A DNA stretch of 64,000 bases from Geosiphon pyriformis uo1 (lineage: Eukaryota; Fungi; Glomeromycota). The position numbers and the translations under genes are program-made. Under the pieces are notes generated by a model, which saw nothing but the letters and a program-made list of their open reading frames with translations, was not told the DNA's origin and searched no databases. Shown here piece after piece: positions 190 to 64,000 of this stretch. The stretch lies in NCBI GenBank assembly GCA_016748015.1, contig JAAOMT010000659.1, forward strand, positions 561,222 through 625,221, written 5' to 3'. Each line of letters begins with the position of its first letter. Position 1 is the first letter of the stretch.

Positions 190-2457
190 TTTTTTTGTTT
201 CTCTAATTTTATAATCATAACCAAAACAAAGAGTAAAAAAGCTGTATCTGATATCTTTCCTGAAATATCTAATAAAATTTCAACCAAAAAAGCTTTTTCT
301 GTTGTAAAAACAACTAAACAGAATGTTTCAAAAATCTTTTTTTTATCTAGTAATTATAAAAAGCTGTTTTTAGTAGCTACTAAAGCAACTTTTTCATCTT
401 TGATTAGTCTTTCACCAGTCAAAGTTCTTTTAAAGAAACACAATTGGATTAGTTTTAATGTTGTCTCTACCTTCTTAAAAAGCCCAAAAATTTTTAATAA
501 CAGATTAGTCAACAAATTGATTTTTTTTTCATAGCTTCTATACCAAGTGTTATTAGCATCTCTTTTTCAAAAAAAATGGTCAAAAAAACCAAGAGTTTAG
601 AAAAGTGGAAGCAGTTACTTGTCTCTGTTATTGTTACACCAAACCTTTTTGTGGTTTTCAATAAAATCTTACCTAAAATTTTTATAGCATCATCTAGTAT
701 ATCATTCAAGATAAGCCAAGATTAACTATTAGCTGTGTTGCTAAATATAGCATTTTCTGATAGATCATTACCAGTTTTAGAAGCAAAACAATTATTTTCT
801 GTAGTGTCACCTGTTCTTGAAAACTGGACTGACTAAATGGAAACTAAATTATTTTTTCTTCTGGTTTTTGGTATTGTTATTAGTGGTGCTTGGGAAATTA
901 TTGCTAGTTATCAAAAATTCATTAAGTAGGTGGTCTTTACTTTGGTGTCTAAAGCTACTTTTAAGATTAAATTGACTTATATTAAGGCTGTTTTTCAGTC
1001 TGTACATGATTTTTTAGGTGTAAAGTCAGTGTTAAAGGACAATGTGAAGCTTTTTTGTAGAGTTTGCTTCCTAAGTGTCTTTAAAAGCTGCATTTTTGGT
1101 TGAGCTTACAGATTTTGTTCATTTAATCTTCTTTAAAATTGCCAAGTTTCTGATGGTTTTTAAGTTTGGTTCCCTTTCTGTTACTATTATACTATGTAAT
1201 GTGTTTTTGAATATATCTGCTGCTAACATTAAGACAGCTTTCAGTATGTTTAGTAGTATTATTCATGTTGTGTTAAAGCCTGTTGACATTTGGTAATATG
1301 TGATTGTTTATTTTGAAAAGTTAGATTCTGTTATGTCTGCTTTAAATTATTGGTTAGTTTTAGTAAACAAAAATAGTATTAGAATCCTCTTTTTGGTAAA
1401 TCAAAATAAAACTATTCTGTTTTATAATAGATTTAAAACCAAGTTGATCAATCTTCTTTCTGGCTGCACAGTTTTTGAAATTAGTAATATGATTTTTCAG
1501 GTTGGAGGTCAAACATGTTTTATTTTTTGTTTTCTTGAGTTTTGTCAGTGTTTTCAGTTTGCTCTAGTTATATTTGGTTCTCAGATTAATTTGGATACTG
1601 TAGTACTTAAGATTGGTATGCTAAAGAAGTGCTGTATCTGGTAAAAAACTTCTGAAAATTGGTACTGTTTTCAGTGCCAAGATTCAGATTATTTGGCTTT
1701 GGATTGTAAAGTGTCTTTACATCTCTTTCTTAAAATTCTTAAGATGTTTATCTCTTGTGTTATTAGTAATACATTGTATGCCAAAGCTGTTGCTTCTGTG
1801 TCTCTTTTGATTGGTTCAGCTTTTTCTGCTAATGTAAAATTTGATAATTTTATGGTCTTTTCTTATTTGACTTTTTTGGAATTGGAGTTAGCCAAGCTTT
1901 CTACTTTGGTCAATTTTATTGTTAAGCCTGTTGGTTCCATGGTAAAAGTGTTTAAACAATTTGTTAATGGAAATTTGGTTTTAAGTAGTGCTCTTGGTTT
2001 TAAGGTCAATGAAGTTTTAGTACATATAAATTCTTTCAACAAAGTTGTTGGTAAGCTGAAATATGAGATGGTTGCTTTGAAAACTGAGTGTAGTTATGAA
2101 AATGTTGATATGTCTGGCCTTTATATAAGTTTGTTTTCTATTGATAATAATATGTTTTCTAATTTGATGTCTTTCTGGGAACATAAATCTGTTACTGTTA
2201 AGATTGATGCTTTTAAAATAGCTGAGTGGTTAATTATATTAGTTAATAATAGTACTATATTATTTAGAGTTGTTTAGAGAATGTTTTCTTTGAGTAAGTT
2301 TTCTTTTAGAGTATCAATATAGTATAGTTTAAACTGACTTAAATAGCTGATTACATATAGAAAGTACATAAATTATATTTAGTACTGGAATACTTAGTTT
2401 GTTTCTAATTTCTAGATAGTAGTTGGGCTTTGCTTGTTAAATTTTAATAAAAAAAAA
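190..2457 (+). mobile_element. Old, decayed ORF1-only non-autonomous LINE-like element (type A), LINE-a-type 3' tail, A-rich end
   Basis: Collinear with the element at 31527-33995 from the first codons (ataatcataaccaaaacaaagagtaaaaaa vs atgaccatgaatagagctaagagtaaaaaa) through the RRM-like segments (FKTKLINLLSGCTVFEISNMIFQVGGQTCFI), a decayed CCHC and the C-terminal domain. Stop ~2320-2322, then tail and poly(A). No RT. Confidence 0.8.
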
Positions 2458-2823
2458 TTATATTATATATTTATATTAATTATAATATTATTATTTAAAC
2501 CAAAAAAAATAAACAAAATTTATATAGCATAAAAAAATTTCAAATATTTTAATAATACTAAACATATAAACTATTTTAATAGACAAAATTATTAATAAAC
2601 TATAAATCAGAAAAAACACAAAATTAATATTATTTATTTAACTATTTTTTTCTATTTTAATTTTAAATTTAGATCTAATTAACCAAATTTTTTTTATTTT
2701 ATTTTATTTTACGAGTGAGGTCTAAACATGACCTAGTGCTATACACCATACAAATGATCTAAACTAGGTGCAAATCATGTACTTTCTACATGTGACCAGC
2801 CACTCGGGCCAGTCAGAACTACA

Positions 2824-5800
2824 CTACACACCTATATGCACAAAAACTGAATCTTCAATACCTGAAAAAAATAGAAAAAACTTACGAAACCCGAAACCAA
2901 CTCCAAAAGCCTCAGCCACCCCCAGCAATCTGACCACACCAGCCGAGAACACCATAGGCAAACCAGAAACTGAAGCAGGAGTGGAGCCATCACGTGGAAT
3001 CAAACTGTGCTTTTCCATAAATGCTCAGTGTTTGGCCTGAACTAACCAAACATCATCCCGAAATGCTAGACAAAACTCATGCACAAAGCTTACAATCCTC
3101 TTAGCACCCTCCTTAGAATCTTTAAAGACCGAGACAGACTCACGAAACCATTCATCAAAAACAAAGCCCTTACACAGAGCAACACCAACTCCAACCTCAG
3201 AAACACAAGAAGCCAAGGCCTGTGAAACACATAAAGAAGAGCGAGACAGACCAGAAAGAGCCTCCCAAGCTGAAGCATGTGCACCCAACAACCGAACACG
3301 GCCAACGGCATCCTGAGAACATGAAAAAACATGATCCGAGGTCTCAACGTCACCACAAAACAGACAGACCACACTGGGGTATCTCCTATTATATAAATGC
3401 TTGTGCACAGCAACAGGAAGCTGATGATGGAGAGCCTTCATAAAGTAAGTACGACAGCCTGCCGTGCACATGCTGGTAAAACCAGATGCCAAGTGAGAAT
3501 CAGGGTGCCACACCATAAAAGACTTAGACCAATTGATATTAGCACGCAAACTATCATCCACAACACAAGAACCCACTCCAATCTCCCAACGAGCTCAATG
3601 AACTGACCGGAAAACATCACGAACAAAGTGTCTAGAATTACCAAAAACTGCTGTACCACCAGCACACAGAAAATGTTTACTGACTAAATAAGGTAGGCAC
3701 CAAGCAGAGAGAGCAGCACCTTTGGCAAGTGCATCAGCATGCTCATTGTCTGAGACACCTGAATGATTTTTCACCTTAACCCAGTTCACATCCAAATTTT
3801 TTTGATGAATGATGGTGGCAATGTGATGACGCTTGATCCAACAGCGGTTCCTGAAATCCGGACGAACCAGCAAAGACTCTGACCTACATGCATCCAACGC
3901 AGCCTGGCTATCTGAGAACAAGTCAATCAAACGAGAAAAAGGAACACACTCAAAGGCCAAAGCTATGGCCTGCAGTTCTGTAAGAGTAGAAGAAACCAAA
4001 CCAGACATCCCAACATCCAAACCCAAGTTAATGTCCTCAAAAAAAATGGCAGCACCTGCTTTCATGTCAACAGTGCCCAGACCAGAAAAAGATCCATCCG
4101 TATACACAGAAAGGCGGGCAGCATCAATGGTCGGCAAAGTGTCATAAATCACACCAAAATCATGAGAAAGATGAATATCAGACACAGCATGACCATCCAC
4201 CAAAGAAGAACTTGAGGAGAAAGACACAACGCTACCAAGAAAGCGAATGGAAAGTTTAAACCAGAAAGAGACTGGGCCATGAGGGTCCAGCCTCTTCCAA
4301 TGCTTGAAGGTCCCCCAACTGAAAACATCACCATTACAGTCACGAAGCTGTTCCACGAAAACAATTCTATAACGCCTGAGCAAAGAGATGCACTTGAAAA
4401 AACAGGATTTACCAAGAACCAAAGACATAGGAGTACCACACTGACGACGAAAAGCACAAGCTAGAAGGCCTTCCAAAGACAAATCACACCCAGAAAAAAT
4501 GTGAACCACACCTGCCAAAAAATTATCCGAGAGACTAATACCAACACGAGCCGGAAACAGCAAGGGATGACGAGGATGCCAGCTGAGAATCTGGAGGTTA
4601 TGAGACCTATGAGAAAACAAGTGACCCAAGACACCAGTAGAATTTGCAAAAGCAACAACGAAGGCCGATTTACTTTCAGCCTGGATCTGTTCGAAAGTTT
4701 TTAAATTGTACAAAGAGGGGTGATGAAATGCATCACTGGGGAAATCATGTGGCAATCCAGACTTGGACTTTAAGACCTTGCATACCAAAGCATCCCATTT
4801 ACTACAAATACCAACAGAAACGAAACTGAACTGAGTTCTGTAGCAGATGATAGGAAAGAGAACTGCAGACACCAAATATGCACACTGTTTGTCCGAAATC
4901 GCCTTTCTCAAAACAAGATTCACAAAAAACCGTACATTAGCCTGAGCTTTAGCCAAGCTAGGCTTCGAAAGACCCTCAGAAGACAAAAAAATACCCAAAT
5001 AGCGATGAGATTCCCCTCTTTTGGCAATGGAAATAGGCGCACCACTGATAGTTAAATAAGAATCCAGCACCCAGCAATTGATGGAGATGGCCACCGTTTT
5101 TTAAATCTAAAAAACTCACTAGCAATATCAAGGATGCGTTGTGTAGCAGCCTGGCTGCTACCAACCCAAATAGTATCATCGACAAAAGCACCAGCAGCAA
5201 GAAACAAAGACAGTCCAGCTTGAGAATCCACCTGGCCAGTTCTTGATATGAAATGAGAATTCAACTTGTAGCTATACACACTATCCTGTTTCTTGACCTT
5301 GCACAAAAGTGAATCATAAAAAATATGCTAGAGAAGAGGTGAGAAGACTTCTCCCTGATCCAGCCCATCATGGACACAATACTCATTAGTCAAGCCAAAG
5401 TCAGTCATCACTCTGTTGATGCAACCATTGTAAATACTGCCAAAAAATCTAATAAATCTGTCACACATTTTGATCCTGACTAGATTTCTCCTAAGATGTT
5501 TCCAATCCACTGAGTCATAAGCCTTGTGCATGTCCTGTAAAACCAGCCAAAGTTTACAGTTCTTCTCCAAGGCATCCTCAACCACAGAACTGATAGCAAA
5601 AATGGGAGATTGCGTCATCGTACCCTTCAAAACCGAAAAATTGTCCCCACAAAAAACATCAAAAATGCTGCAAGCCAGAAAGATCTTATCTAAAAGAATC
5701 TTGGAGAGAATCTTGTAGGCCGTTTCAATTAAAGCTATAGGATGGGTGTTTGTGAGAACTCTTTCTCATTCATATGGTTTAGGAATCATTGAAACTCAGG

Positions 5801-7490
5801 CTTCTTTCCAAGGCCCAGGGACTGACTCGTCAACCAAACAGAAATTCAAGAGCACCAAAAGCATATCCAAAACAGATTTGTCACAATGTTTTTATTATTC
5901 GTTGGAGATACCAGAAAGACCAGCCGCTTTTCCATCAGGAAGATCCTCAACAACAGCTGACAACTCATCAAAACTAATTGAACACATGACATTAGAAAAA
6001 GCACCATCGAACATGTACTCCAGAGGCCGATATTAACGAGCCCAATCCTCAGATAAGTCAAACACTACCTCACATTTTCTGGTCCATCCCTCCATAATAT
6101 CATCCATCTTAGACTTAACCAAATCAGGCTCCAAAATCAACTCATCATCCACAACCAAATGATCCAGGACCACCTTGTGAAATGGATGCTCCAAGACACT
6201 CCTAATGGTGTGACCCTTGTTCAGCTCAAAACTCTCCATTCTCCTATTAATAGTCTGCTTGATAGAAAATTCCTCAGCGCGCTTAGATTCCGATAATTTA
6301 AGAAAGTGGTATGATTTTCTTGCTTTGGCCAGCGCAGAACAAATAAGATCAAAATTAGAATCTGAAAGAAACAGAGACTTAACCACCAATGTGCCAGGGG
6401 AGTCGAGTCTGTGCCACACCTCCAACAAAGAAGCAAAACCATCACTAGAAGCCAAATGCGAAGCCTTGACCAACTTAGAAACCAGCAGCTCTAGCTTGTG
6501 AAACCTAGAAAAAGTCTTAGTAAACACGTTATCAAAACCTTTGAACCATTTTTTCTTAAATATACCACCCGCTGAAAGAACCAAAATCTTGTGAACAATG
6601 TCCCACATAGTGTCCACATCTGAAAATCTTACTGCCACACCAAAAACATCCGAGAACATGGAGACATTAGCAGCTGAGGCATCTCTGAACTCCAACCACT
6701 TAGCTTTACTGGCACTTTTGATGTCAAACTTCCAACGGTCTTTATTTGCTTGCTTGCGAAGAGAATTCAAACACGTATCCAAGAGCCCACCCAAACCCAA
6801 ATCCACTGAAACAGCTTGATGGTCTGTGTCAAAATGCTCACTGACATTCAAAACTTCACGATGCACTATTGCATTGACAAGACTCGAGGAGACAAACACG
6901 TAATCAATTGTTTTCTTAACACCCCTAGAATTTTCCCAAGTGGGCATTTTTGCAGCCAGGCTATCAACTAAAAAATTGACTAGACCCAAATCAAAGCATC
7001 TTTTGAAACTTGCACATTTATGAGAGCTGTCTTCATTAAAATCACCACCGAGAATGATGAAAGAAGATTCGTTGACAGCCTTTGCAATAAGAGAATTGAT
7101 TTCACCAGCTTGAAAGAACCAAACCACCAAAGAAGCACCAGCATAAAGCCCCAAAATTAACACAGAAAGTTTGCCCTTGAAAAGTAATTTAATGGAAAGG
7201 AGCCGACCAGGCACCTCAGAAATTTTGCACACATAACAAGCCAAAGAAACGTCCATGATAACAGCAACACCCGCACCCAAGTGACCAGAGTCCAAACCAG
7301 AAGTGAACACTCGGACACCATCGAACTTGTTTGCAATCCACAGACAAACCCTACTTCTTAATTTCATTTCAGTAATGATAGTGACCAAATTGTTTATTTC
7401 CTTATGCCACCTAATAATGTCCTCTTGCTTAGTGAGATTGTTCATGCCTCTGACGTTGCACGTAGCAACTTTCCAGACTAAACTGCTCAT
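2824..7490 (-). pseudogene. LINE-a ORF2: AP endonuclease, RT, RNase H, C-terminal zinc finger
   Basis: APE: TCNVRG, ILGGDFNE, IDYVFVS, TDHQAV. RT: QDMHKAYDSV, GLDQGEVFSP, AFVDD, YLG. RNase H: YTDGS, ELQAI, SDSQ, HSG..DNEHADALA. Zinc finger: CLFCGDVETSDHVFSC. Broken by stops and frameshifts. Confidence 0.93.
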
Positions 7491-9280
7491 TGGGTGAGGG
7501 GTAAAGAAACCGAAAACACACCTATACTATCCACTTTGGCCAAAAGACCCAGAACTGTCTCCATTAGACACTTCATGCTGTCTTCCAGCTTAGACACTGA
7601 AGACATATCAAAAGACACCGCCCCCATGACATTCCTACCACTAGTGGACACACCCGAACTCTCACTCATCACTACATCCACCCCTTGATCCTGTGATGAA
7701 GAGGTCACCAATGGCTGACATCCAGGGCTAGGCTGGAGAACCATTGGCCCGAATACATTCAACCTTTTAGCCAGCTTACCAACTTGCTCCGCGAGACTGG
7801 CAAGACTGCGCTCAAGAGCGGCAAACCTATCATTGACTTCCATCGCAACCTGTTGGGACAGCTTCATCTCTGAAGAGGAGCCATTATTCACCACAACATT
7901 CTGACTAGAGAGGGGGGGCGAAAAACACCTGCGAGCAACCTTTGTCTAAGAGAAACCACCAAAAGAGACCGGATGGGCAACTGGAGCCGAGCATTTGGCA
8001 TAGATGGTTGCTAGCCTGCTTTTATCTGTATCTGAGAAAACCCTACGCAGTGAACTACTAGAAGAAAATTTCCCACCAATTGCACAACCCAATAACATGT
8101 GACCCAATTTTTTACACTTGGCGTATTTAGCAGAAATGAGGCAAGACCAGCGGAGATTGGTGTTTCTGAGTACTGGCGTGGTTCCCACAGCAGCATTCAA
8201 TGATTCAGCAGAGTCAAAACAAACAACAGCACACCTGGCCCAAGCATATGTAACAGAATGATGATCAATGACGCACGTTTTTCCACCTACAGATCTAACA
8301 AAGTCTCAGATATCATAAGTGGTGGTCCCCATTGGCAATGTGTAGAGCAGCGCCCTATGTTGGTCCCTTACATCTCATGCTTCCTTGTCTGAATCAGCCC
8401 TAGCCACATGTACAGCATCTTTCCCGATTAAGATGGACCACTCAGCTGCAGCCAAATCAGCTTGATCCGATCGTTCGAATTCCACTATCGCCTTCTGTCA
8501 CAGCCTGATTAACTGCATCTTGATCGCCTTAATAACTCCAAACTTGGATAGCGCAGCACGCACAGCCTCAGCCGATGTCCCAACTGGAATTTCTTTCATG
8601 ACCACAGCCCGATCTGATCATTCAGATGATCTCTTAAGATCAGTGTTTACCAAGATATTCACACCAGTAGCTTTTTCAGTGGCCTTCATTAGACCCGATT
8701 CGGAAGTGAATGTCACTTTGATGATCCCTGAGAATTTTGAGGGGGTAGATGCCCCTCCAAAACCATTAATTCCTGAAAATAAATTTCTGATCTTTTTGAG
8801 CTTTTCCTGGGCCAAATTTCCTTCTACTACTTTCAGATCCAAATCCAAAGCAAACAACTTTCTAATAGAAACATTGACCAGATTCTTAAGAGGAGGGGGA
8901 AGCACCAGAGGGACATCCAGAAGAACATCATCATCATCATTGCCATCCAGGAAGTTGATTTTTCCCAAAGGCTTTCCCAATGTTTTCCTAGTTGTCACCC
9001 GCAAACCTTTTGGCATTTGATCCAAATTTCCACCAACGAGCGCACCACCTTCACCATAATCGAAACTTGTTTTCTCTACAAGACACTCCTCTTCCATATC
9101 AACACTGTCAGATTCTGTGGTATCACCAGTCTCCGAACCCCATGAATGACCACTTTGCATCTTAGCAGAATCCTCTTTAGCACCAGCATTGTCTTCAAGA
9201 ACACTGCCTTTTCTCTTTTTTCTTGACAGAACAGCCTTGAAACCACTCACAGAGCCAGAACTTTCAACTATCTTTTTCAT
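7487..9280 (-). pseudogene. LINE-a ORF1 (RRM-like domains, decayed CCHC knuckle, coiled coil), in-frame stops
   Basis: Same-frame fragments 8618-9280, 7946-8200, 7487-7894; AVRAALSKFG..., YAKCKKLGHMLLGC, RFAALERSLASLAEQVGKL. Confidence 0.85.
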
Positions 9281-9894
9281 GGCAGCAATACTAGGGCCAA
9301 CAACGGTCTCATAATCAAGCAGAAACAGTTTGGATTTATCGTACTGAATGGTAAAAAACTTCTTTCAAAAAACTTTTGACTCTTTTTTGGGATTTGTGGA
9401 GGAACGAGAGAAAGAAGTCTATTTATTTTTTTAACAAAATTTCTTTGGTCCCAAATTTTGCTTTAATAACTAATTATTAAATTGTAAATAAACACAATTA
9501 ATTTAAAAATATTAATTTTAATATTATTAAAAATTAAATAATTATTTTTTAAAAATAATATTCTTATATAAAACTATATATATCTTATTATTAAATATAT
9601 TAAAAAATAATATTTGTAATATTAAAAAGAATAAAATATATTAATCATAAACTTTTTAAAATTAAAGTAAATTCTTAATTATTTTATTACAATATATATA
9701 TTAAATATTAAAATACAACTTGTTAAACAATTATTTATAAACTAAAATAAGTAATTTTATATATATTATTTTTATAATATAAGTATATAAATTATTTAAA
9801 AATTTATTTATAAAATTAAATATTATATGTTTATTAAAATATTATATTAAAAACATATAAATTTAATTAATATCTTTAATTATAAATTTTATTA

Positions 9895-10555
9895 TTATTA
9901 TTATTATGGTTTAATGAGTAAGATCCAATTACTATTTAGAGATATACAACATATATACATTATAAACTAAATACAATTTATGCACTTGTTACATATAATC
10001 AGCCACTTAAACTGAACAAAACTACACTATGTATTTGTCATTACCATCTACTTATCATCCAAACCTGAAAAGAACAGACATTTACAGCACAAACCAGAAT
10101 ACACACCCTAAATCTTATCAACACTAAGTAACATAATTACTCTATTATTCAAATTGCTTATACCTTTGGTATTATTAGGGAAAACATTATTATTGACAGC
10201 TAAAAACTCTTTTTTCTCAACATTTATCCTGCATTTGGTTCTGTGGCACCATATTTCAAACCTGTAGGTTAATGCCAGACATCTTACAAATACTACAATT
10301 TGGGCATTAGCTAATTTAGATTCACCAAAAATTATTACAATTTCATGATATTAACTTGTAGGCACCAAACTCCTAACCAAAAAAAAATACAAACCAGTAT
10401 TTTTTCCACAGTAAGACAAATCCTGGATAACATTAGAAGAAGGCACATCAATACCAAGTACAGACAACCACTTTTAACTAAACTTAGATAAGACACTGCT
10501 ATAAATAAAACTATTAGAATTACACTCAAAAGCATAATTATAAGTGTTAATTTCA
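9895..10555 (-). mobile_element. Decayed 5'-truncated LINE-a-like remnant (ORF2 C-terminus + 3' tail)
   Basis: Tail tagtgtagttttgttcagtttaagtggctgattatatgtaacaagtgcat... aligns with the LINE-a tail; ...FFSGLD-like C-terminus. Confidence 0.65.
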
Positions 10556-10684
10556 TTGTAAAATATATATCTTATACTTAAATATGATTTGCAATACAGA
10601 TTATAAATTTATTAATAATATTAACACCAAATCTAATTTTTTAATAAATATAACAAATAAACTTATAAATATTATAAACCAAAT

Positions 10685-11690
10685 ATTATTTTATTATTAT
10701 TATAAGATTTAATGAATAAAGTCCAACTGCTATCTAGTATATAGAACCAGACTAAGTAAATCAAACTAAATACAGTTCACACATTAACTATATATGACCA
10801 CTCACTTAAGCCAGTCAAGGCAATATTATATGTCTATATTAATAAAAGTATCACCATCTAAACCAGAAAAAAAATAACATATCTTGTGTTTACCAAAACT
10901 AACAGCAAAAGATTCCATAATACCAAGCATATGAATCACCCCATCTAACAATATAGACATTACACAGTAAGACAAGCCCATAATTAAGCCATTATTTTTG
11001 ACCAAACTAGTCTTTTTTATATCTACCCTATGTTTAGACTTAATTAGCCACACTTTTGTGTGATATAACTCCACTACAAACTAAATATAATTAACCAAAG
11101 CCAGAAAAATCTTTTTTTTTTCTCAAAAACCAGAACAGTTTCAGCATATTAATCTCTTAATACAAAGTTTTTGCAAATTGCAGTGTACAAAATCATATTT
11201 GAAGCACACATTGAAAGTAAATGCAAAACAACAGAAGTAGACAAGCAAAAAAAATCTGTCAATGACACCTATTTTTTAGCAGCTTTAGCTAAAATGTTTT
11301 CATGAAGACCAATGTTATCAAAACAAGTAAAAACATGATCAGACAACTCCATCTTGCCATACAGCAAGCACAGTACTTCAGGATAATTTTTATTATATAA
11401 CTTCTTCTTAATTGCTACTGGCAGTTGTCTATGTACTGCTTTCATTATATATGTGTACAGATTAGCTGATTTTTTATTAGTAAATTTAGAGAGCATATGT
11501 GAGTTAGAATGCTAAATTATCATAGTAGTAGTTCAATTTATTTCTTTAATCATAATACTTGAAACAACATTAAAACTAGGACTAATCTCCCAATGAGCAT
11601 GGCAAATTAACTGGTACAGATCACAAACAAAATAATGAGTATTACCAAATACAGCAGTATTCTTAGCAACCAAAAACTGTTTTCAAATTC
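10685..11690 (-). mobile_element. Decayed 5'-truncated LINE-a-like remnant
   Basis: YTYIMKAVHRQLPVAIKKKLYNKNYPEVLCLLYGKMELSDHVFTC and ...FFSGLDGDTFINIDI match the LINE-a ORF2 C-terminus; tail present. Confidence 0.8.
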
Positions 11691-26400: not shown

Positions 26401-29200
26401 GAAAGGCTCATCAATTTTTCTGCCAATTGCTTCAAGAAAATGTTTGGCAATTACACTAACAGATAATCTACTGTCTAGGATCAGATTAATGAAGTAACCA
26501 GCCACTTGGGCTTTACAAATCAGAGAGGTAACATTGCTGTTATTAGCAAGTCCAGCTTGGCGAGGACATTTGTTGGTCTTTGGTGTCTTCTTCTTTGGTA
26601 TCAATAATTTATGAAGATCTTTTCTAAACTGTAGATGGGTCATTAGTTAGCCAAATGTAATGTGTGTTGGGGTTTCTATAAAATCTTTAACAACAGAATA
26701 GGGTCCAAATTTTTGTACAATTTCTGAGGGTTCCAACTTTGGAGAATTTTTAAAAATCTTAGTCTTTGGTGGCTCATTGTTATCAGCAGATAATTTGGAT
26801 GCTTTATTTGGGTTCAAGACAAAATCAACCTTGGCTTTCTTTTTCTTTCTGGTTGATTCAGAGGTGTTGATTGCTAGTTCATCCATATCATGATCATCAT
26901 TAATTAGATTAAAAGCATAAAAAGAGTTTTCTTCTAGTTGGTTTGTACTCTCACCCTTTGGAGGTGTGCCTACCAGTTTAAAGGCTGATAAACAGTAGCT
27001 TTAACTAAGAGATCCTCTCCAAAAAAATTGATGTTGGCATGATTGGGTCTTTGATTGGAAACATTATTATTGTTGGGTCTGTTATTCTGGGTATCATTAT
27101 TTCTGGGAGCTGGAGAAGACAATAGAGGATTGTTACAGTCTTTGGAAAAGAATCCAGTTAGTTCACAGTGATAGCACACAGGTGGGCCATGATTTTGTTG
27201 TCTTTGATATGATGATTGCTAAGGCTGATTGAAACAGGGTTCAAATCTGGATCTTTGGAATTGTTGGTTGTCTCTGACTGCTTGGGCTAATGGTTCTAAT
27301 AGCCAGACAAAATTAGCTGTAAGTTTATCTATTAACTGTTCATTTGGATCATGAGTTTGGGCAGCAAAAGAGGTAGCAGCCATTTGGGGAGCAGAAGCAA
27401 AAACTGGAAGTGTGGATCCTAGGTGCATTCTTTGATTGTCTTCTATTCTTTGAGCAAGTTCAATGGCCATATCTATTGTGGGATTATCTTTCAAGGCCAG
27501 GAGGGGCCAAAGAGCATATGATAGATCAGTTCTCAGTCCTTTTGTGAAGAAATGTATTTTCTGCTCTTCTGTCCAATTTCTTTCAGAGTCTATCTATTTA
27601 ATGAGTTTTTTTATTGCTTTGACATATTCTGTTACAACTTCATCAGGGCCTTGAGTTCTTTTTTCTAATTCCATATGCCATTTTGAAATTAAGATAGAAG
27701 TTCTAAATTTTGTTTCAAACTGGGTAGTAAAAGAGGTGTTGTCTTCTCCAGCATTTGCTGGTGCCCATCTAATGATTTTTTGCTGAACATTGGCATTGGT
27801 TTCTTGTAAGAACCAAGTAGCAGGAGAGCCTTGAAGGTAGCCACCAACAATTTGGAACTTGTATTCATTATCATATTGGTTTGCTGTGGCAGCTCTCTCA
27901 AAATTATCCAGCCATTTGATTGGATCTTAGGCATTACCTTTGAATAACAATAATGGTGTGTTGTTTTTTTGTCCTAAAGCAGTCTGTATACCTTAAAGGA
28001 CGATCAAAATGTTTTGTTACAGAGGGTCTTGAGCCATTGGTTCAGGTGTAACTGTTTATGTGGAGTGTTCTGATTCACTTGAAAAGAGATCAAAAACAGG
28101 AGCAGTTTGATAGCTTTCTTCTTCTGTTTCAAGAGAAGTTTCTGTTGATTGATAGGCAGCAATCCAAATGTGGATTTGATAATTCAAATATTCGAAATCA
28201 GGAGGCTGTTGTTCAAAGATTGTAGAATATAAGAGCTAATTGATACTGTTGTTTCTTTCTTTAAAGTCATCTTCAAGATAAGCTTGGTCAAAGTAATAGA
28301 TTGTATAAGCTGTGTAAGTTTCAGCTGAATGCTCATTCAGAAACCAGTTCCAAAAGTCTTAGAATTGTCTGCTGGATTGTTTTTCAATGGGAAAGCAAAT
28401 CAAGCAGGAGAACAAAAAATTGAGTTCAATAAAGTCTAAATTATTTTTGTTGTGTGTTTCAAAGTGTTCTTTTGATTGTTGTGGCAGATATGAATAATCA
28501 CTCATACAATAAGAAACAAAGTGGATTTTGACAACCTCACAGGAAGCACCACTTTTATGGTATGGATTGGAGTAACAAGCTAATGGATAGCAAGGGAGAA
28601 CAGAATTGTAAGGTAATAGAAACAATTAAAGGGAATTCAACTTCAATGAGTGAATTGAATAAGTATGAATTCAATGTGCAAGATTAGTCTCATAAAATAT
28701 CTCAGTTGCTATTCTTTTCAAAGATAACCAGGGAATTTGAAGATAGAAGAATAGTCTATACTGTCAACAAATGATCACACCTGGTATAATTCTATGCTTC
28801 ACATCAGCACTCTTAGAATTCAATATCAGGTATCAGATGTACTCTTCAGTCACATTTTATTTAATAATTTTCAAATGCTATAATTACATGTTTTAGGAAA
28901 AGGGTAGGAAATAACTAACAAATAATTTTTTATCTTTAAGATGTTCAGATACTTGAAAGTAGGGAAAGGGAAATTAGTGATAAAAGAGAGATTAAGATGA
29001 AAGTTGTTATTTTATTTATTTTATTTCCTTGATTTCTTCATGCTTTTCTACAGCTAAGAGATTCATTACTTATATAGCTATTAAAAGTAGTCAATAGTCA
29101 GGTTAATGATCACTTACTAAAAATAGAGTGGCTAATTTATGTGACATTAGTGGCTAATACATGTAATAATTAATAAGAAGTATAAGTTTCAACCATAACA
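23413..29200 (-). mobile_element. Gypsy-1 copy W, 3'-truncated (5' LTR 28558-29200; ends inside integrase at V)
   Basis: LTR, PBS, gag, PR, RT, RH and IN N-terminal half fragments. Confidence 0.9.
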
Positions 29201-29675
29201 TTATGATTAATGTTAAAAAAGCATCTAGGATGCAGTGCGAAATCTATGCAAAAGAAACTGATTGATTGATTGATGAAGCACAAAGAAAATCAGTAGATAA
29301 CAGCAATGATAATCTAAACTTGATGTGGCTTACAATCAAGAAGACTGTACTACAAGCTGCTGATTGCCTACCAAAGAGGAAAGTAGAAGCCTGATCTGCA
29401 TACACAAAGAAAGAATGCATGAATCACAAGCTTGTTAAGATTGTTGCTGATATAATCAAACATATAAGAGTAAACAATGCAGATATGCATAATAACAATG
29501 TTATGCAGTTGTTGGCTAAATGGAAACAGTTAAAACCTGAGGCAGTTAATACATATCTGATGACTCTTCCAAAGAATAAGCGTATTACAGAATTACTTAG
29601 TATTAAAAAAGAATACAGATCAACACTGTGTGCTAAAATCAGACTACAACAGCAGAAACAGATAGTGGACAATAT
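29201..29675 (+). pseudogene. LINE-b ORF2, post-endonuclease region (left half of the LINE split by X)
   Basis: ...NLNLMWLTIKKTVLQAA...QQQKQIVDNI continues in frame as IRRQQNFDLNKE after 55679 across the ATAT TSD. Confidence 0.8.
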
Positions 29676-31526: not shown

Positions 31527-33995
31527 ATAAAAAAAACTCTTTTTCTCCTAAATTTCATGACCATGAATAGAGCTAAGAGTAAAAAAATTGCAAACATTAC
31601 TTTTCCTATAATAACTAATAAAGTTTTAACATGAGAGGGTCTCTCTGTTATTGAAGCAGCTAGACAAAACGTTCTGGCAACATTTCTTTTAAAAAATAAT
31701 AGTAATAAGCTGCCTTTAGCAGCTTCTGGTTCACTTTCTTCTCCTTTGGCTGGAAGTTCTTCTCCAGTCAAAGTTCCTTCAAAAAGATACACTTGGATTA
31801 GTCCCAGTGTTGTCTCTACCACTTCGAAAAGCCCAAAGATTTTTAATAACAGACCAGTCAACAAGTTGGTCTTTCCTGCTTTCACTACTTCCACTACTAC
31901 TTCTACTACTACTGCTTCACAAATGGCCACAAAAGTAAAAAATCCCAAAAAACAGCAGCAGGCAGTCGCAACTGCTATAGTCACACCAAACTCCTTTGTG
32001 GTTCCAGATGAGATCTTCAGTAAGATCTTTACAGCAGCAGCCAACCTTATTTCTGATATGGATGGCAACAGCAGCAGCACATCTCCCAAGATGGGCCAAG
32101 ATTAACCACTGGCTGTGTTGCCTGATGTGGTATTCTCTGGCAGATCATTGCCAATCCCAGTAGCAAAACAGTCCATCAATCCAGATGATCTCAAAAATTG
32201 GGCTAATCAGATGGAAATGGAATCAACTGTTCCCCTCCCAGTTTCTGGTGCATCTGATGCTAGTGCTTGGGTGAATGTGACTGAATGTCAAAGGTTCTCT
32301 GGTTGGGTGGCCTCCAATCTTGTACCTGGTGCTACATTTAAGATCAAGATGGCTTTGCTCAGTTTTTTGTTTCAGTTGCTGCCTGGTTGTATTGGGCTTA
32401 AATTTGTTTTACAAGATGCTGTCAAGTTGTTCTGTATAGAATTTGTGTCTCAGAAGTGTCTAAATGGTGCTACCAAAGTGGCCATTGGTGATGAAGTTTT
32501 TTTGACTATTCTTAAGATTACACAGTTTTCAGGAGTGGCCTTTGTTTCTTTCCCTTTTTTGTCAGTTGCACTGCGGGACATACTCTTGAGAGCCTCTTCT
32601 GATGACATCAAATCTGCTTTTGGCATTTTTGGTGTTGTCACTTCTGTTAAGTTAGAGTCTGCTGGCTTATGGCAATATGCTGTGATTAACTTTAAAGACA
32701 TTTCTTCTGCTGCTGCTGCTCTCTCTAACTGGTCTGTGTTGGTCAGGAAAGATAGTGTTAGGATTCTTCCCATTGCCAACCAAAAGGAGATTATCTTCTC
32801 AAGAGATGCTTTCAAAGCTAAGCTGATTAATCTTTTATTTGGCTGCACTGCATTTGAAATAAGTGATCTGGTCTCTTAAGTTGGTGGCTGTATGTGTTTC
32901 ATTCCCTGCTCCCCTGATTCCTATTGATGTCAATGCTTTGCTGTAATGACCTTTGATTCCTTGGAATTTTTAAATGCTGCTGTTTCAAAAACTGGTACCT
33001 TATGTGGCTGCTGCATCTGGTGGAAAACTCCTGGATGTCATCGCTGCTATAGATGTCAAAGTTTGGATTATTTGGCTGTGGACTGCAAGGTGTTGCCACC
33101 TCTCCCTCCCAAACTCTCTTCTAATTCTGCTGGTGGTCCCATCTTTTTCAAGTCATCTCTTGTTGGAACTAAATCTTATGCCAAAGCTGCCATCTCTGTG
33201 GTTCCTCCTGTTGCTGCTGCTGCTGATACAGGTTTGGCTTTCACTACCTCCCCCAAAGTTGTGGTGCCACTGTTGCCGGTTGCTTCCTCTGGTTTAGATG
33301 TTGCTATTAATGCTAGATTGGCTTCTCTGAAAACCCAACTTAGTGAACTGTCTTTGTTGATCAAATCTATAGTTGAGCCTGTGAGTTCTTTGGTTGCATT
33401 GGTTACTACGTTATTGTCTACTCCACCAGTTATGGCAGAGGCAATAAAGGAAAGTGTGATTGGATTGGGAAACCAAATTGAAGCTGTTTGTGCTGTGGCT
33501 TCTGTGCTGCAAAAAAGTGGGGGCTCTCAAGTTGAGGAGTGGGAAAGTACACTATAACTTATCTGATGATAATAACATGGATGATAATAATGATGATGAT
33601 GATGATAGTGAGGCTAAAGATTTTTCAGTCTATGATGATACATTTGATTTGATGATGGAGTTATGGGAGGTTCAATCCTCTAATATCAAGTCTGATCCAG
33701 ATCAGATGGCTAAGTGGATGAGCAGTCTTGTTAAGAGTAGTCATGAACTTGTATGCATTATGGGTAAGATGTATGAATAAGATATGTTTAATACATTAGA
33801 TAGCAAAGGTAGTACTAGCGTGTAGTTAGGGCTTTCTGCTTGTGGTTAGCCGCATCTTGTAATTTGTATTATTGGGTGAGCTGGCTTTATGAAACCACCA
33901 CATTACTGTGAAATAACTAATAAATGACCAGCGTGGCTACACATTAACAAAATAAAAAATAAAAAATAAAAAATAAAAAAAAAATAAAAAAAAAA
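31527..33995 (+). mobile_element. ORF1-only non-autonomous element (type B), full length, LINE-b-type tail, poly(A), ~13-bp TSD
   Basis: TSD atgattttcta(c/t)a at 31514-31526 and 33995-34007; ~30-nt 5' UTR; single ORF; 3' UTR 33826-33938; A-rich tail. Confidence 0.9.
31557..33825 (+). pseudogene. ~755-codon ORF1-like protein: S/T/P-rich N-terminus, RRM-like domains, CCHC knuckle, coiled coil, acidic tract, C-terminal helical domain
   Basis: DDIKSAFGIFGVVTSVKL...YAVINF; FKAKLINL.FGCTAFEI; CYRCQSLD(H/Y)LAVDC; ARLASLKTQLSELSLL; ends GSTSV*. A few stops and one frameshift. Confidence 0.85.
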
Positions 33996-55675: not shown

Positions 55676-58600
55676 ATATAATTAGAAGACAACAAAACTT
55701 TGATCTAAACAAAGAAACAATAATCAAAAGCATCCTGAACAAAAAAAGACAAATAATTGTACTGGACTATGTCATTGAAGAAGGCAAATTTCATGATGAT
55801 CCTGATGAAATTAAAAAACTAGTAAACAAAAAAGCCCAAGAGTGGACTAGAACAAGAATCCTTGAGTCTGAGCTATGGAAAAGTTGGGAACACAGATTTG
55901 AACCAATTGAGAGCATTCCAGACCATGTCTTTGATGATGTAATGGCTGAAATAACAAATGAGAAATTTGAACACATATTGAGCCACACACCTCATAATAA
56001 AGCCTCTAGTCCATCAGAAAGGCTGGGCCTAATACCAAGTCTAAACTGAGAACATTGCTCAATGCTTGCATAGAAGCAGCAAACATGCCTGAGGAGTGGA
56101 GAGTAGCACATGTTATACTGATTCCAAAGCCAAAAGAATGGAGTGGCAATATTGACATCACAAGGCTGATCACACTTATTGAAAGCACTAGAAAAATCTT
56201 AACAAAGATTCTAACTGTAAGAATATTAAAAGCATGTGAACTTCACAATGTCCTAAAAGGTTACAATACTTCAGTGTTAAAGAATACTTCCACAGCAGTT
56301 TCAATTCATGTGATTAATGCTGTCACTGAACATGCAAGAGAATTTGGTAATAAGGTCTGGTTTACATTTCAGGACATGAAAAAGGCATATGATTCAGTGG
56401 GATGGAAACCCATGGAAGCTGTACTAAAAAGAATTAAGATGAACAATAGGTTACTGAGCTATTTGGCTTGATGCACAACAATAAAAACAATAGAATCATA
56501 ACTGAATTTGAGTTAAGTGACAAATATCAAGTACAAAATGGACTAGATCAAGGGGAAACAAGCTCTATGACCCCTTACTGTGTAAAGTAAAACAAGCCAA
56601 TTATAGTCATGGATACAAACTAACAGCTGCATGGAAAAAGTGGGACAATCAATCAGATACACAATCTTTGTTGGTATTAGTGAATCATCTAGTCTTCATT
56701 GATAACACAGTATAGATAGCTAACTCAAGACAGAGAATGCAGAGTATTCTGGACACAGCTAGCTCCTTCTTTAAAATGGTAGATATAGAGGTCAACTTAG
56801 ATAAGACTGAAACAATAGTGGTCAAACCCTCTAAAGGGAGATTATTGATGGTTGAGCAACTAAAATTTGGTCCAAACAAACAAATCTTGAAATTGCTGGA
56901 TCCATTTACATGTACCCAATATTTGGGAGTATGGATCAGAGCAGATGGAAAAAATAAAACTGTTCTAAAAATGATAGGATCTGACATTGAAGCAATATGT
57001 GCAGTTATTAGTAAAAAACACATCACTGAAAAACAGGCCATTTACATTTTTAACAGTGTTTTCAGTCCAACAATAGAATTCAGATCTCAATTGACCCATA
57101 TTCCAAATAGCTGGGCTAGAAAATAGACTTCAAAAATTTTGGCCACTATAAAGAAAAAGGTGAAACTTTCAATAGATTTCCCAGCCAGTACTATGCACCA
57201 CTCATCCTTGTATAACTTGTTCAAAATTGAGAATATACAAGCAAAAAGCAAGATCACAGATTTGTTGGTTAGATTGAACAGTACTAATATTGCTGGAATG
57301 GCTACAAAAATCAGACTAGCCAACTTACAGACACAAAGATAGTTAGCTCATAATATACTTAAATACCCCACCAATGAATAATCTAGGCCAGGAGTTAATC
57401 TAATAGCTAATATTATGCAGATAATAGAGGAAAGGGACATCTCATTCAGGAGCGATGGTAACACACATGAGGTACTTGAATCTTCAAGACCACAGGCATA
57501 TTTAATTGAGACTATCATACCTTCAAGTACAACCTACATCAAAGTTAGAAGCTTACTGAGGAAGAAAAACATTTTGTACTTGCATCAGATACAGAACAAA
57601 GATAAGTCATTGATGACATGGATGGACTTCACAAGGAAGTACAGACAAAATGATAGTGGTAGAATTCTCAGATGGTTCAAAATTTTGGAGTCTATGATCA
57701 TTATGGATAAGCACAGGAACATTGATGTAACACAATGTGAAGTACTGGGGATGCACAAACTGACTAACCAAATACCAGATGATTTAGAAACAATACAAAG
57801 AGACACTATTTACATCCATATCCCTAACACTTTATTACCACAATGGAGGGGTGTACAAGAGAAGTTGAGACTCAGAAAAGAAATAGAAATATCAACAGAT
57901 GGCTCACTAGTAAAAGCTGGTTCTAATGATGTGAGAGAAGTGGCTGCTTTCATAATACATGGAATGGAGGCCGAATTTGGTATAGCAGTTGATGAAACAT
58001 TATCATCAACAAAAACAGAGGTGAAGGCTGTATTATTGGCTTTGGAAGCAGTACCTTACAGATGCAAGCTGACAATAAACACAGATAGTCAAGCAGTGAT
58101 GTCAATGGCTCAAAAATAGTTATCCAAAGATTTTTTCTTGTTTATTAGAAATCAGCTCAAAACTTCAAACTGGCACACATGGAATGCAATCAGAGCAATA
58201 GTAAGGGAAAAGAGGATTGATCTCAACATGAACAAAGTGGCTGCACATACTGGTATGTTAGAAAATGAGAAGGCTGACAAACTAGCCAAAGAATCTACCA
58301 ATCTTGACACAGTAAGATGGGTCTATAATGCTAAGGAGATTGCATACATTCCCCTTTGCAGAAGAATTGAATTGGATCTAAATATCAGACATTTTCTGAG
58401 TGAACAGACTAGTCTTCAAGTAGCTTTGGATTGGATAGACAACAACAAAGTCCAAGAGATGTTAGGTTCTTTAGACCAAGATATAGACTGGATGTGCAAA
58501 ACCAAGATTTGGAACTGGGATGGTAAAATGTCATTAGGTTTTACCTCAGCTGGTTCTTCAGCAATGTGCACATTTATTATGAAATCATTTCACAACATGC

Positions 58601-59398
58601 TGCCAACAGCAGAGGTGCTATACAACAGATGTCCCCTTGTATACCTAAACAATCTTTGCAAAATATGTCACAGAGAAGTGGAAACCAACCAGCACTTTTG
58701 GGAATGCTCTCTGAATACCCAAGAGGGCAAGACATTGATTAATGATGTAAGAGATAAGTGGATACAGTGCCTTTCAAAGGCTGTGAGAGGGGAATGTGAA
58801 GCCCTAAACACTAATAAAAAAATTGTGTTGTCTAATGAATACATCATGTCAACATCTAATATAGATCTGCTGTATAAAGGATTGATCAATAAGCAATTTG
58901 GAAGAATCAACACTTTTGCTGACATTGACCTAAAGACTAACAATAATATATTAATTAAGGTGTGTAAATGGGCAGTTAATCAAGCAAGGAATAGATTGTG
59001 GAGAGAACATTGCAAATTGCAAACTAAATGGGAAAAATCAATGAGTATTGATAACAGGGTCAAAAAAATCCATCTGATGAGTCCAACATACATAATATGT
59101 TAAGAAATAATGATAGAGATATTGGCAAACCCATAGGCAAAATAGGTGGTGTATTCACACAGTGTAATAATATACTGACTAATGTTTTTTGTGGTAGAAA
59201 TACTTTGTGTAATAGTGTGATACTCCATAGATTTTCTGGTTATACTAGCATGTAGTTAGGCATGACCACTTAATAGTTAGCCACATCTTGTAATTTAGAT
59301 TATTGGGTGAGTTGGCTTTATGAAAAGGTCATGCTTTTTGAATGTGGCTAAACTAATAAAAGACCAGCATGGCTACATGTTAAAAAAAAAAAAAAAAA
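55676..59398 (+). mobile_element. LINE-b right half: RT, RNase H, C-terminal zinc finger, 3' UTR, poly(A)
   Basis: WRVAHVILIPK, QDMKKAYDSV, GLDQGE, YLGVW, ISTDGS, NTDSQ, AAHTGMLENEKADKLA, CKICHREVETNQHFWEC; A17 at 59382-59398. Confidence 0.92.
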
Positions 59399-59482: not shown

Positions 59483-62400
59483 TTTTTTTTTTGTTAACAT
59501 GTAGTCACGCCGGTCATTTATTAGTTATTCCACAGTAATGTGGCAGTTTCATAAAGCCAGCTCACCCAATAATACATATTACAAGATGCGGCTAACCACA
59601 AGCGGAAAGCCCTAACTACACACTAGTACTACCTTTGCTACCTAATGTATTAAACATATCTAATTCATACATCTTACCCATAATGCATACAAGTTCATGA
59701 CTACTCTTAACAAGACTGCTCATCCACTTAGCCATCTGATCTGGATCAGACTTGATATTAGAGGATTGAACCTCCCATAACTCCATCATCGAATCAAATG
59801 TATCATCATAGACTGAAAAATCTTTAGCATCACCATCATCATCATCATCATTATCATCATCCATGTCATCATTATCAGATAAGTTATAGTGTACCTTCCC
59901 ACTCCTCAACTTGAGAGCCCCCACTTCTTTTTGCAGCACAGAAGCCACAGCACGAACAGCTTCAATTTGGTTTCCCAATCCAATCACACTTTCCTTCATT
60001 GCCTCTGCCATAACTGGTGGAGTAGACAATAACATAGTAACCAATGCAACCAAAGAACCCACAGGCTCAACTATAGATTTGATCAACAAAGACAGTTCAC
60101 TAAGTTGGGTTTCCAGAGAAGTCAATCTAGTGTTATGGTTGAAACCCAAAGTTTTTATTAGTTATCACATGTATTAGCCACTGATGTCATATAATTAGCC
60201 ATCCTATTTTTAGATAGTGATTGTTGACCACTTTAGATAGCTATATAAGCGATGATTCCCTTAGCTGTAGAAAAACATGATCAAAGTAATGAAATAAAAC
60301 AATATCAATTACTTCCTCTCATATTGCTTATTTTTCTTTTCTTACCTTCAAGTATCTACTTGTTGGCATTCACATACCTTATCTTTTCCCCTTTTTGATT
60401 TGTATTTGTTAGAATTAGCCTGAGAAGCAATTGGCTTGCTCTTGTAATTCATTGAATAAAGAAACGATTGAAAAGCACAATGATACCTGTTATTGATTCT
60501 AAGAATCACTGAGTTGAGGCATAGAATAATAGCAGTGGTGTTATCTTGTTGACAATCACGGACTATTTCTCTACCTTCAGATTTAAGAAAAGATTAGCAA
60601 CTGTGATTTTTATGAGACTGATCATGCACATTGAATCCTTACTCATTCAATTCGCTCTCTTATTGTAATTCCCTCTTTGTTTATTTCCATCACCATACAA
60701 TAGTGTTCTCTCTTGCTATCTGTTAGCTTGTTACTCCAACCCATAACACTAGCATTAACAGCAACATCTGAACCAGAAGAGGCAACCGGCAACAGCGGCA
60801 CCACAACTTTGGGGGAGGTACTGAAAGCCAGACCCATATCAACAGCAGCAGCAACAGGAAGAACCACAGAGGTGGCAGCTTTGGCATAAGATTTAGCTCC
60901 AACAAGAGATGACTTGAAAAAGATGGGACCACCAGCAGAATTAGAAGAGAGTTTGGGAGGGAGAGGTGGCAACACCTTGCAGTCCACAGCCAAATGATCC
61001 AAACTTTGACATCTGTAGCAGTGACGACATCCAGGAGTTTCCCACCAGATGCAGCAGCCATGTAAGATACCAGTTTTTGAAACAGCAGCATTTAAAGATT
61101 CCAAGGAATCAAAGGTCACCACAGCAAAGTGTTGACGTCAATAGGAATCAGGGGAGTGGGAAATGAAATACGTACAGCCACCAACTTGAAAGACCAGATT
61201 ACTTATCTCAAATGCAGTACAGCCAAATGGAAGATTAACCAGCTTAGCTTTGAAAGCATTTCTTGAGGAGATAACCTCTTTTTGGTTGGCAATGGGAAAA
61301 ATCCTAACACTATCTTTTCTGACCAACACAGACCAGTTAGAGAGAGCAGCAGCAGCAGAAGAAATGTCCTTAAAGTTAACCACAGCATATTGCCATAAGC
61401 CAGCAGGCTTCAACTTAACAGAAGTGACAACACCAAAAATACCAAGAGCAGATTTGATGTCATCAGAAGAAACTCCCAAGGGTACGTCACACAGTGCAAC
61501 TAACAAAGAAGGGGAAGAAACAGAGGCCACTCCTGAAGACCGATCAATCTTAAGAGTGGTCAAAAAAACCTCATCACCAATGGCCACTTTGATAGCACCA
61601 TTTAGACACTTCTGAAACACAAATTCCATACAGAACAACTTGACAGCATCTTGTAAAACAAATTTAAGCCCAATACAACCAGGCAACAACTGAAACAAAG
61701 AACTGAGCAAAGCCATCTTGATCTTAAATGTAGCACCAGGTACAAGATTGGAGGCCACCCAACCAGAGAACCTTTGACATCCAGTCACATTCACCCAAGC
61801 ACCAGCATCAGATGCACCAGAAACTGGGGGGGGAACAGTTGATTCCATTTCCATCTGATCAGCCCAATCTTTGAGATCATCTGGATTGATGGACTGTTTT
61901 GCTACTGGAATTGGCGATGATCTGCCAGAGAGTACCACATCAGGCAACACAGCCAGTGGTTGATCTTGGCCCAACTTGGGAGATGTGTCACTGCTGTTGC
62001 CATCCATATCAGGAATAGGGCTGGCTGCTGTTGTGGAGATTTTACTGAAGATCTCATCTGGAACCACAAAGGGGTTCAGTATGACCATAGCAGTTGTGAC
62101 TGCCTGCTGCTGTTTTTTGGGATTTTTTGCTTTTGCGGCCATTTGTGAAGCAGTAGTAGTAGAAGTAGTAGTGAGAGTGGTGAGAGCAGGAAAGACCAAC
62201 TTGTTGACTGGTCTGTTATTAAAAATCTTTGGGCTCTTTGAAGTGGTAGAGACAACACTGGGACTAACCCGAGTGTGTCTTTTTGAAGGAACTTTGACTG
62301 GAGAAGAACTTCCAGCCAAAGGAGAAGAAAATGAACCAGAAGCCGCTAAAGGCAGCTTATTACTATTATTTTTTAAAGGAAATGTTGCCAGAACATTTTG

Positions 62401-62538
62401 TCTAGCTGCTTCAATAACAGAGAGACCCTCTCGTGTTGAAACTTTATTAGTTACTATAGGAAAAGTAATGTTTGCAACTTTTTTACTCTTAGCTCTATTC
62501 ATGGTCATGAAATTTAGAAGAGAAAGAGTTTTTTGTCT
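59483..62538 (-). mobile_element. ORF1-only element type B, full length, interrupted by a solo LTR
   Basis: ORF 62508->59616 (MTMNRAK...GSTSV*), same 5' start as the 31527 copy, LINE-b-type tail and poly(A). Confidence 0.9.
60131..60748 (+). repeat. Gypsy-1 solo LTR (Z subtype), CTAG TSD
   Basis: TG...CA termini, ctag at 60127-60130 and 60749-60752, no PBS or PPT. Confidence 0.95.
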
Positions 62539-63760: not shown

Positions 63761-64000
63761 TTTTTTTTTTTTTTTTGTCAACGTGTAGCCACGCCGGTTG
63801 TTTATTAGTTATTCCACAGTGATGTGGTGGTTTCATAAAGCCAGCTCACCCAATAATACATATTACAAGATGCGGCTAACCACAAGTGGAAAGCCCTAAC
63901 TACACGCTAGTACTACCTTTGCTACCTAATATATTAAACATATCTAATTCATACATCTTACCCATAATACATACAAGTTTATGACTACTCTTAACAAGAC
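63761..64000 (-). mobile_element. 3' end of another type-B ORF1-only element (runs off the window)
   Basis: Poly(A), LINE-b-type tail, ...GSKGSTSV* C-terminus. Confidence 0.9.

Follow-up and report, generated by a model that had tools for sequence, protein, structure and literature searches.

Sister ORF1-only retroelement families bearing the 3' tails of two different LINEs in Geosiphon pyriformis

Geosiphon pyriformis harbors two families of ORF1-only non-LTR retroelements, here termed type A and type B, which have closely related bodies and unrelated 3' ends. As an earlier note on this DNA had proposed, both are discrete ORF1-only retroposons that are each other's closest relatives, whereas their tails are not homologous to each other: the tail of A matches one LINE (LINE-a) and the tail of B matches another (LINE-b). 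From the sequence comparisons, this discordance between body and tail appears to require at least one recombination of the two. A and B are thus probably sister families that carry tails from two different LINEs, with B having taken the LINE-b tail later. The case stands on the discordance between body and tail, not on the ORF1 tree alone.

ORF1-only elements and LINEs of the window

The window, i.e. the whole 64,000-nt stretch of DNA that was analyzed, belongs to an AT-rich, repeat-laden region (27% GC) of the G. pyriformis nuclear genome. Its components are nested Gypsy LTR elements, two families of LINEs (non-LTR elements), and small ORF1-only elements (Table 1). The best protein matches of the window all bear the G9A89_ tags of this species.

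Table 1 Non-LTR features of the window.
Feature	Position	Strand	Evidence
Type A element, P0108-like subfamily; decayed 2.27-kb ORF1-only non-LTR retroelement	190..2457	+	At least 30 end-to-end copies
A ORF1 remnant: RRM-RRM-CCHC knuckle-coiled coil-C-terminal region	211..2319	+	tblastn (B ORF1, annotated A proteins), translations
A 3' tail: TAG stop (2320-2322), 3' UTR, AATAAA, poly(A)	2320..2457	+	Homologous to LINE-a 3' UTR
LINE-a, non-LTR element of autonomous layout, 6.74 kb	2690..9431	-	At least 20 full-length copies at 86-92% identity, Pfam
LINE-a 3' tail, ~130 nt, from the ORF2 stop TAG (2826-2824)	2699..2826	-	Alignments with A tails
LINE-a ORF2: APE, RT, and RNase H	~7526-2827	-	Pfam
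LINE-a ORF1, 597 aa	9280 to ~7490	-	Translation
Tail-only remnant, LINE-a-like type, extreme 5' truncation	9895..10010	-	blastn against A and LINE-a tails
Tail-only remnant, second A-tail type	10690..10831	-	blastn; z = 14.9-25 against A tails
LINE-b ORF2 fragment, upstream part of the copy resumed at 55685	29205..29671	+	tblastn, P0011 residues 415-539
Type B copy 1, ORF1-only, 2.43 kb, tail from 33823	31531..33958	+	At least 40 genomic copies, translation, tail comparison
LINE-b, 3' 3.7 kb: RT, RNase H, C-terminal domain, 3' UTR (59252-59386)	55685..59398	+	tblastn, tail alignment
Type B copy 2, broken by a solo LTR (60130-60749)	59483..62534	-	Self-BLAST, translation
Third B copy, 3' end, leaving the window	63761..64000	-	Self-BLAST, genomic search (copy G000:C733:624982-627251)

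In genomic searches that each scored the ~40-60 best candidates, at least 30 other places aligned end to end with the type A element (query 2-5 to 2264-2268) at 73-81% identity. All copies open with (A)nCTCTTTGTCTCC..ATGACC and close with AATAAA and a short poly(A), and these constant 5' and 3' ends indicate that type A is a discrete retroposed unit of 2.27 kb. The copy in the window is dead: its ATG at 211-213 now reads ATA, and its frame is interrupted by 7 stops and shifted at least twice. Transitions predominate among the differences between A copies, with substitutions counted by means of column majorities that served for counting alone. Intact relatives of its ORF1 carry Pfam domains RRM_1 and zf-CCHC, and the P0094-like A subfamily comprises at least 60 copies, three of them with intact ORFs (e.g. 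C659:642422-644545). Several A target-site duplications are visible, although the AT-rich flanks yield chance matches that are equally long. Type B is represented by at least 40 full-length copies in the genome, and 6 of the 12 copies read have target-site duplications of 14-22 bp. The A and B units, of 2.27-2.43 kb, are each filled by a single ORF with RRM_1 and zf-CCHC, and Pfam and tblastn gave no RT or APE matches inside them. Both families are abundant, with thousands of first-look candidates in the 128-Mb genome, and many copies figure in the annotation as hypothetical proteins (G9A89_ tags).

Of 30 A copies, at least 19 lie no farther than 1.5 kb from another tail. That A faces LINE-a tail to tail, as B copy 2 does LINE-b, was considered as a clue to mechanism and set aside, since clustered elements are bound to have, in flanks of 1.5 kb, inverted tails on the downstream side and tails of the same sense on the upstream side.

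Both LINE-a and LINE-b are autonomous in layout. An ORF1 of ~640 aa lies upstream of the LINE-b endonuclease (gene models P0158, P0026, and P0011), and in the LINE-b copy of the window, Gypsy LTR elements and B copy 1 form a 26-kb nest between the two parts. We considered whether LINE-b might be an ORF2-only element of 3.7 kb that obtains its ORF1 from B, and rejected this idea: other LINE-b copies continue upstream and have their own ORF1, and the 3.7-kb appearance arose because an LTR insertion had cut the query element. A two-component LINE, in which one partner lacks its own ORF1, was therefore not found for either family, and because LINE-a and LINE-b each encode an ORF1, A and B are not simply the missing ORF1 of these LINEs. 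The ORF2s of the two LINEs share only ~25% identity in the endonuclease, and the sense strands of A, B, and LINE-a are T-rich whereas that of LINE-b is A-rich.

A ciliate or code-4 genetic code was ruled out for the window, since the in-frame TGAs of LINE-a represent decay of CGA or TGG. Each of the five premature stops in its ORF1 differs by one transition from a TGG or CGA in copy L031, and the protein was read across breaks with X for alignment and tree building. Among 49 copies, roughly half have CGA in place of the TGA at 3595-3597; the LINE-a ORF2 consequently extends to the TAG at 2826-2824.

Relationships of the bodies and of the tails

The ORF1 proteins of A and B were compared using intact annotated representatives (e.g. 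P0094 and P0108 for A, and P0038 for B). They align colinearly over 677-722 residues with 47-49% identity and scores of 567-583 bits, which bears out the claim of the earlier note that the two ORFs are homologous end to end. In the window itself, B ORF1 aligns by tblastn to positions 211-2301 through its residues 1-562 and its C-terminal residues 2-159. The LINE ORF1s are more remote from both families and do not distinguish between them: LINE-a ORF1 scores 125-126 bits against A or B alike (29-33% identity), and LINE-b ORF1 scores 54-62 bits (20-27%). About 300 N-terminal and 120 C-terminal residues, as well as the DNA of the 5' end, are common to A and B only. The first 70 nt of the 5' DNA match with z = 20, and identity is 70% over the first 330 nt, whereas the 5' ends of A and B compared with that of LINE-a gave non-significant values (z = 0.7-3.1). 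An origin by internal deletion predicts a match to the tail LINE in ORF1 and at the 5' end, and this was seen neither for B ORF1 nor between the 5' ends of A or B and LINE-a.

All four ORF1 proteins (A, B, LINE-a, and LINE-b) possess an RRM-CCHC plan followed by a post-knuckle region of ~200 aa. In LINE-a ORF1 this region is 198 aa long, against 208 aa, and weakly resembles that of A and B at the start of the coiled coil (hhalign E = 0.048), while hhalign found no significant counterpart in it for the terminal DDTFDSMMELWE/IKSDPDQMAKWM part. The earlier statement that the C-terminal domain is absent from LINE-a ORF1 thus applies to this terminal part but is too broad for a region that has the same length and a weak coiled-coil match in the LINE.

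The earlier note had suggested a phylogeny of ORF1 proteins as a check. The maximum-likelihood tree of a 384-column ORF1 core placed A and B apart from LINE-a and LINE-b with support of 96/95, so that the proteins did not group with those of their tail-matched LINEs. In the AU test on the same core, however, a tree joining A with LINE-a and B with LINE-b was not rejected (delta lnL 7.8, p = 0.29), because the LINE branches exceed 2 changes per site.

Tails were examined by local alignment, each pair being scored as z against 500 dinucleotide-preserving shuffles. In addition, 30 A tails, exclusive of the P0094-like subfamily, were aligned with 2 LINE-a tails. The window A tail matches the LINE-a tail at 45/64 positions (z = 10.3), and that of the less decayed A copy L030 does so at 95/126 (75%; z = 27.3). 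A tails also match the remnant at 10690-10831 (z = 14.9-25), whereas against LINE-b or B tails they remain at chance level (z from -0.7 to 0.8). These values agree with the earlier note, which had matched the A tail to LINE-a and the remnant and not to LINE-b, and they place the match to LINE-a far above a composition-matched background. In turn, the B tail is identical to the LINE-b tail at 109/137 positions (z = 36), and at 103/117 (z = 45) when taken from L049, an older B subfamily; B against LINE-a is at chance level (z = 1.0), and the two LINE tails compared with each other gave z = 2.5. Hence A and B each share a 3' end with an apparently autonomous LINE of the same genome.

Tail homology begins at the stop codon in the A/LINE-a and B/LINE-b pairs alike. 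Upstream of the stops, stretches of 150 nt gave z = -0.8 to 2.9 for A against LINE-a and z = -1.1 for B against LINE-b, the sole exception being the last 15 nt ahead of the stop, of which 12 are alike in B and LINE-b. Body and tail meet at the same junction in 30 copies of A and 13 of B, which lie on different contigs. Both LINE tails fold better than their shuffles (z = -2.2 and -3.6), with a predicted fold of -34.9 kcal/mol for the LINE-a tail, to which the former value belongs.

Origin of the discordance and alternative explanations

The tails evolve slowly, with 75-88% identity between partners, so a tail split of the same age as that between A and B should still be alignable. Since the bodies of A and B are close and their tails cannot be aligned, at least one recombination between body and tail is indicated. 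The proposal of the earlier note that an ORF1-only lineage exchanges its 3' module at the stop codon is therefore sustained as to one exchange and its boundary, although the data require no more than one. Either the parasite lineage or a LINE may have exchanged its 3' end, and parsimony is what points to one of them.

A different account is that A and B, like the HAL1 families with their multiple origins, are independent ORF2-loss derivatives, A of LINE-a and B of LINE-b, each of which kept its tail with no swap at all, the likeness of A and B being due to slow evolution of their ORF1s and fast evolution of those of the LINEs. It can draw on the tree that the AU test leaves standing (p = 0.29) and on the RRM-CCHC plan and ~200-aa post-knuckle region that all four proteins have. 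We nevertheless consider it quite improbable, because B is no nearer to LINE-b ORF1 (23% identity, 59 bits) than A is (62 bits) and A is no nearer to LINE-a ORF1 than B is (126 bits each), and the ~300 N-terminal residues, the ~120 C-terminal residues, and the 5' DNA are peculiar to A and B. Tails as slow as these (75% for one pair, 80-88% for the other) contradict a split of the same age that has left the A and B tails unalignable, and the distance between the LINE-a and LINE-b endonucleases (~25% identity), along with their opposite strand composition, also speaks against this account. An explanation based on chance likeness of AT-rich, low-complexity 3' ends, or on an assembly or nested-insertion artifact at one locus, could appeal to the 27% GC of the region and to the heavy transition decay of the window copy; it is scarcely credible in view of z values of 10-45 against dinucleotide-preserving shuffles and of the recurrence of the junction across contigs, in 30 copies of A and 13 of B.

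The direction of the exchange is a separate matter, as the data give a discordance and no direction. A LINE, e.g. LINE-b, could have taken its 3' UTR from the ORF1-only lineage, or both families could descend from an autonomous LINE outside the sample, one whose ORF1 was A/B-like and which recombined with LINE-a as well as LINE-b. The LINE-b tail is nearest to that of the older B subfamily L049 (103/117), which fits both directions, and sampling comprised the best 120 of 291 ORF1 homologues and ~40-60 genomic candidates per search. These possibilities seem unlikely, given that they need an extra event and then leave the B tail with an unknown origin, that ORF1 similarity and composition tie A and B to LINE-a, whose tail A bears, and that no RT or APE Pfam domain occurred in A/B-like gene models among the best 120 of 291. 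Moreover, we infer that a LINE swapping the tail recognized by its RT should lose mobility if recognition is stringent. Stringent recognition of the 3' tail is established for stringent LINE/SINE pairs.

With an exchange on the side of the ORF1-only lineage as the preferred reading, the lineage would have arisen from a LINE-a-like ancestor, because its ORF1 similarity and its sense-strand composition are both closer to LINE-a. Type A would have retained the ancestral tail, and the B branch would have swapped in that of LINE-b, thereby probably changing its helper LINE. One plausible route is template switching by the RT at the short identity (12/15 nt) around the stop codon; in another, a master copy would have received a tail-only LINE-b insertion at its 3' end. 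The occurrence of tail-only remnants and the insertion of elements beside each other's tails make such a DNA-level acquisition plausible. Since SINEs show stringent recognition of the 3' end by their partner LINE, A and B may, by analogy, depend for mobilization in trans on the ORF2 protein of the LINE that shares their structured 3' tail.

Relative ages were compared through the divergence among copies. Median pairwise identity is 74% for A, 93% for the young group of B, 87% for LINE-b, and 92% for LINE-a (two copies), and pairwise transversions reach 0.059 among the sampled A copies compared with 0.003 among LINE-a copies. The sampled A copies are thus much older than the LINE-a copies, so that present-day LINE-a may not have been their helper. 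According to the earlier note, the lineage persists by tracking whichever LINE is active; divergence does not show such tracking, the A copies being far older than those of LINE-a.

Within A, the tail type needs at least three changes on the body tree, which is at most suggestive of further exchange. Possession of its own ORF1 protein would let an ORF1-only lineage outlive any single LINE family. We raise only tentatively the idea of a long-lived hyperparasite that repeatedly swaps its 3' UTR at the stop codon, perhaps with a third tail in the P0094-like subfamily.

Comparison with known systems and implications

ORF1-only half-LINEs have hitherto been viewed as products of deletion in their own LINE that do not last long, and tail exchange is an accepted way for non-coding SINEs to switch LINE partners. 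What appears to be new here, as read from the sequences, is a protein-coding half-LINE that bears the tail of a LINE other than the source of its ORF1. To call this an undescribed system, as the earlier note did, is too strong, because ORF1-only LINEs and SINE tail exchange have already been described (PMC5786205, PMC5753468).

HAL1, HeT-A, and Ag-Sponge are known ORF1-encoding bipartite non-autonomous LINEs (PMC5786205). Mammalian HAL1 resembles A and B in being a LINE derivative that encodes only ORF1p, keeps the LINE ends, and is mobilized in trans (PMC5753468, PMC5786205), as A and B presumably are. It differs in having arisen by repeated deletion from its own L1 partner, which it matches in body and tail; in B, by contrast, the tail is that of LINE-b but the ORF1 is not (23% identity). 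The LINE clade of A and B, with an APE-RT-RNase H layout and an RRM plus CCHC ORF1, is also distinct from that of HAL1. The HeT-A/TAHRE/TART system of Drosophila likewise includes an ORF1(gag)-only non-LTR element that relies on the RT of another element, and ORF2-defective telomeric elements have UTRs in common with their progenitors (PMC13534243). Those elements are specialized for telomeres and carry the UTRs of their own progenitor, whereas A and B are dispersed and have tails that belong to unrelated LINEs. Like A and B, Ag-Sponge of Anopheles (CR1 clade) is an ORF1-encoding non-autonomous LINE (PMC5786205); it is not described there as exchanging tails between unrelated LINE partners.

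The closest parallel for the tails is found in SINE superfamilies (CORE-, Ceph-, and others), which combine a conserved body with varied LINE tails and in which an occasional tail exchange changes the partner (PMC5786205). SINEs are short, non-coding, and transcribed by pol III, unlike A and B, whose body is a 2.1-kb protein-coding ORF1 with the junction at its stop codon. Among fungi, EKA / Avrk1-Avra10 of Blumeria graminis is a multi-copy family derived from a LINE ORF1 (PMC4641428); in contrast to A and B, it consists of truncated LINE copies co-opted as effectors and is not described as ORF1-plus-tail retroposons with swapped tails.

If the proposed exchange is correct, the 3' UTR would act as a recognition module that can move between elements, with the stop codon as its boundary, and the ORF1p and ORF2p of different LINE families could cooperate on one RNA. 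The A/B system would then offer a natural test bed for cis-preference and 3'-end recognition outside mammals. Recognition of the A and B families also cleans up the gene catalogue for a mycorrhiza-type fungus that diverged early.

Tail types and subfamilies within the A family

When the tails of the 30 genomic A copies (L001-L030) were placed on the tree of their element bodies, at least three changes between the LINE-a-like tail and the tail type of the remnant at 10690-10831 were needed. For instance, two copies (L009 and L018) carry a LINE-a-like tail, yet are nested in a clade with the other type. Within A, these changes may reflect additional tail exchange or recombination. The A family also includes a second large subfamily that resembles the annotated protein P0094; at least 60 of its full-length copies were scored, and three of them retain intact ORFs of ~710 amino acids.

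The A-type and LINE-a-type elements are also strongly clustered, both in the flanks of L001-L030 and in the window at 9895-10831. At least 19 of the 30 A copies have another A/LINE-a-type tail within 1.5 kb, and in five copies such a tail lies directly upstream of the element's own 5' end, which fits insertion into pre-existing poly(A) tails.

A predicted stem in the LINE-b tail, compared with B tails

Comparison of young B tails with the LINE-b tail (33823-33945 versus 59252-59386) revealed two differing internal segments, which correspond to both strands of the predicted outer stem of LINE-b. At roughly the same position, the B tail possesses its own complementary pair, GTGGTT/AACCAC, which could be a compensatory replacement. 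The sense strands of the families are of opposite composition, with A, B, and LINE-a being T-rich (32-39% T) and LINE-b A-rich (37% A).

Positions of interrupted copies, LTR insertions, and a representative of the second A subfamily (window coordinates unless a genome contig handle is given)
Feature	Position	Remark
LINE-b copy, two pieces	29205-29671 + 55685-59398	26 kb of nested Gypsy LTR elements plus a B element lie between the two pieces
Further LTR element	23415-29204	On the upstream side of the split LINE-b copy
Solo LTR	60130-60749	Inserted within B copy 2
P0094-like A subfamily, example	G000:C659:642422-644545	

Gene models and decayed codons

The ORF1s of these retroelements account for hundreds of G9A89_ gene models. 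Three NCBI models annotated as hypothetical proteins (P0098, P0161, and P0162) are chimeras of A, B, and LINE elements: in one type, an A ORF1 is spliced into LINE-a in antisense orientation; in the other, the ORF1s of B and LINE-b are fused.

Within families, transitions exceed transversions by 3- to 27-fold. In the LINE-a copy of the window (- strand, 3595-3597 + 7490-9280), every in-frame TGA or TAG stop is a single transition away from a TGG or CGA codon of another copy. One CGA codon has become TGA in about half of 49 LINE-a copies, a case of recurrent CpG decay. Decay of this CGA/TGG type makes ORFs of the Geosiphon pyriformis genome appear longer under genetic code 4, in which TGA is read as Trp; claims of such a reading elsewhere in the genome therefore call for caution.
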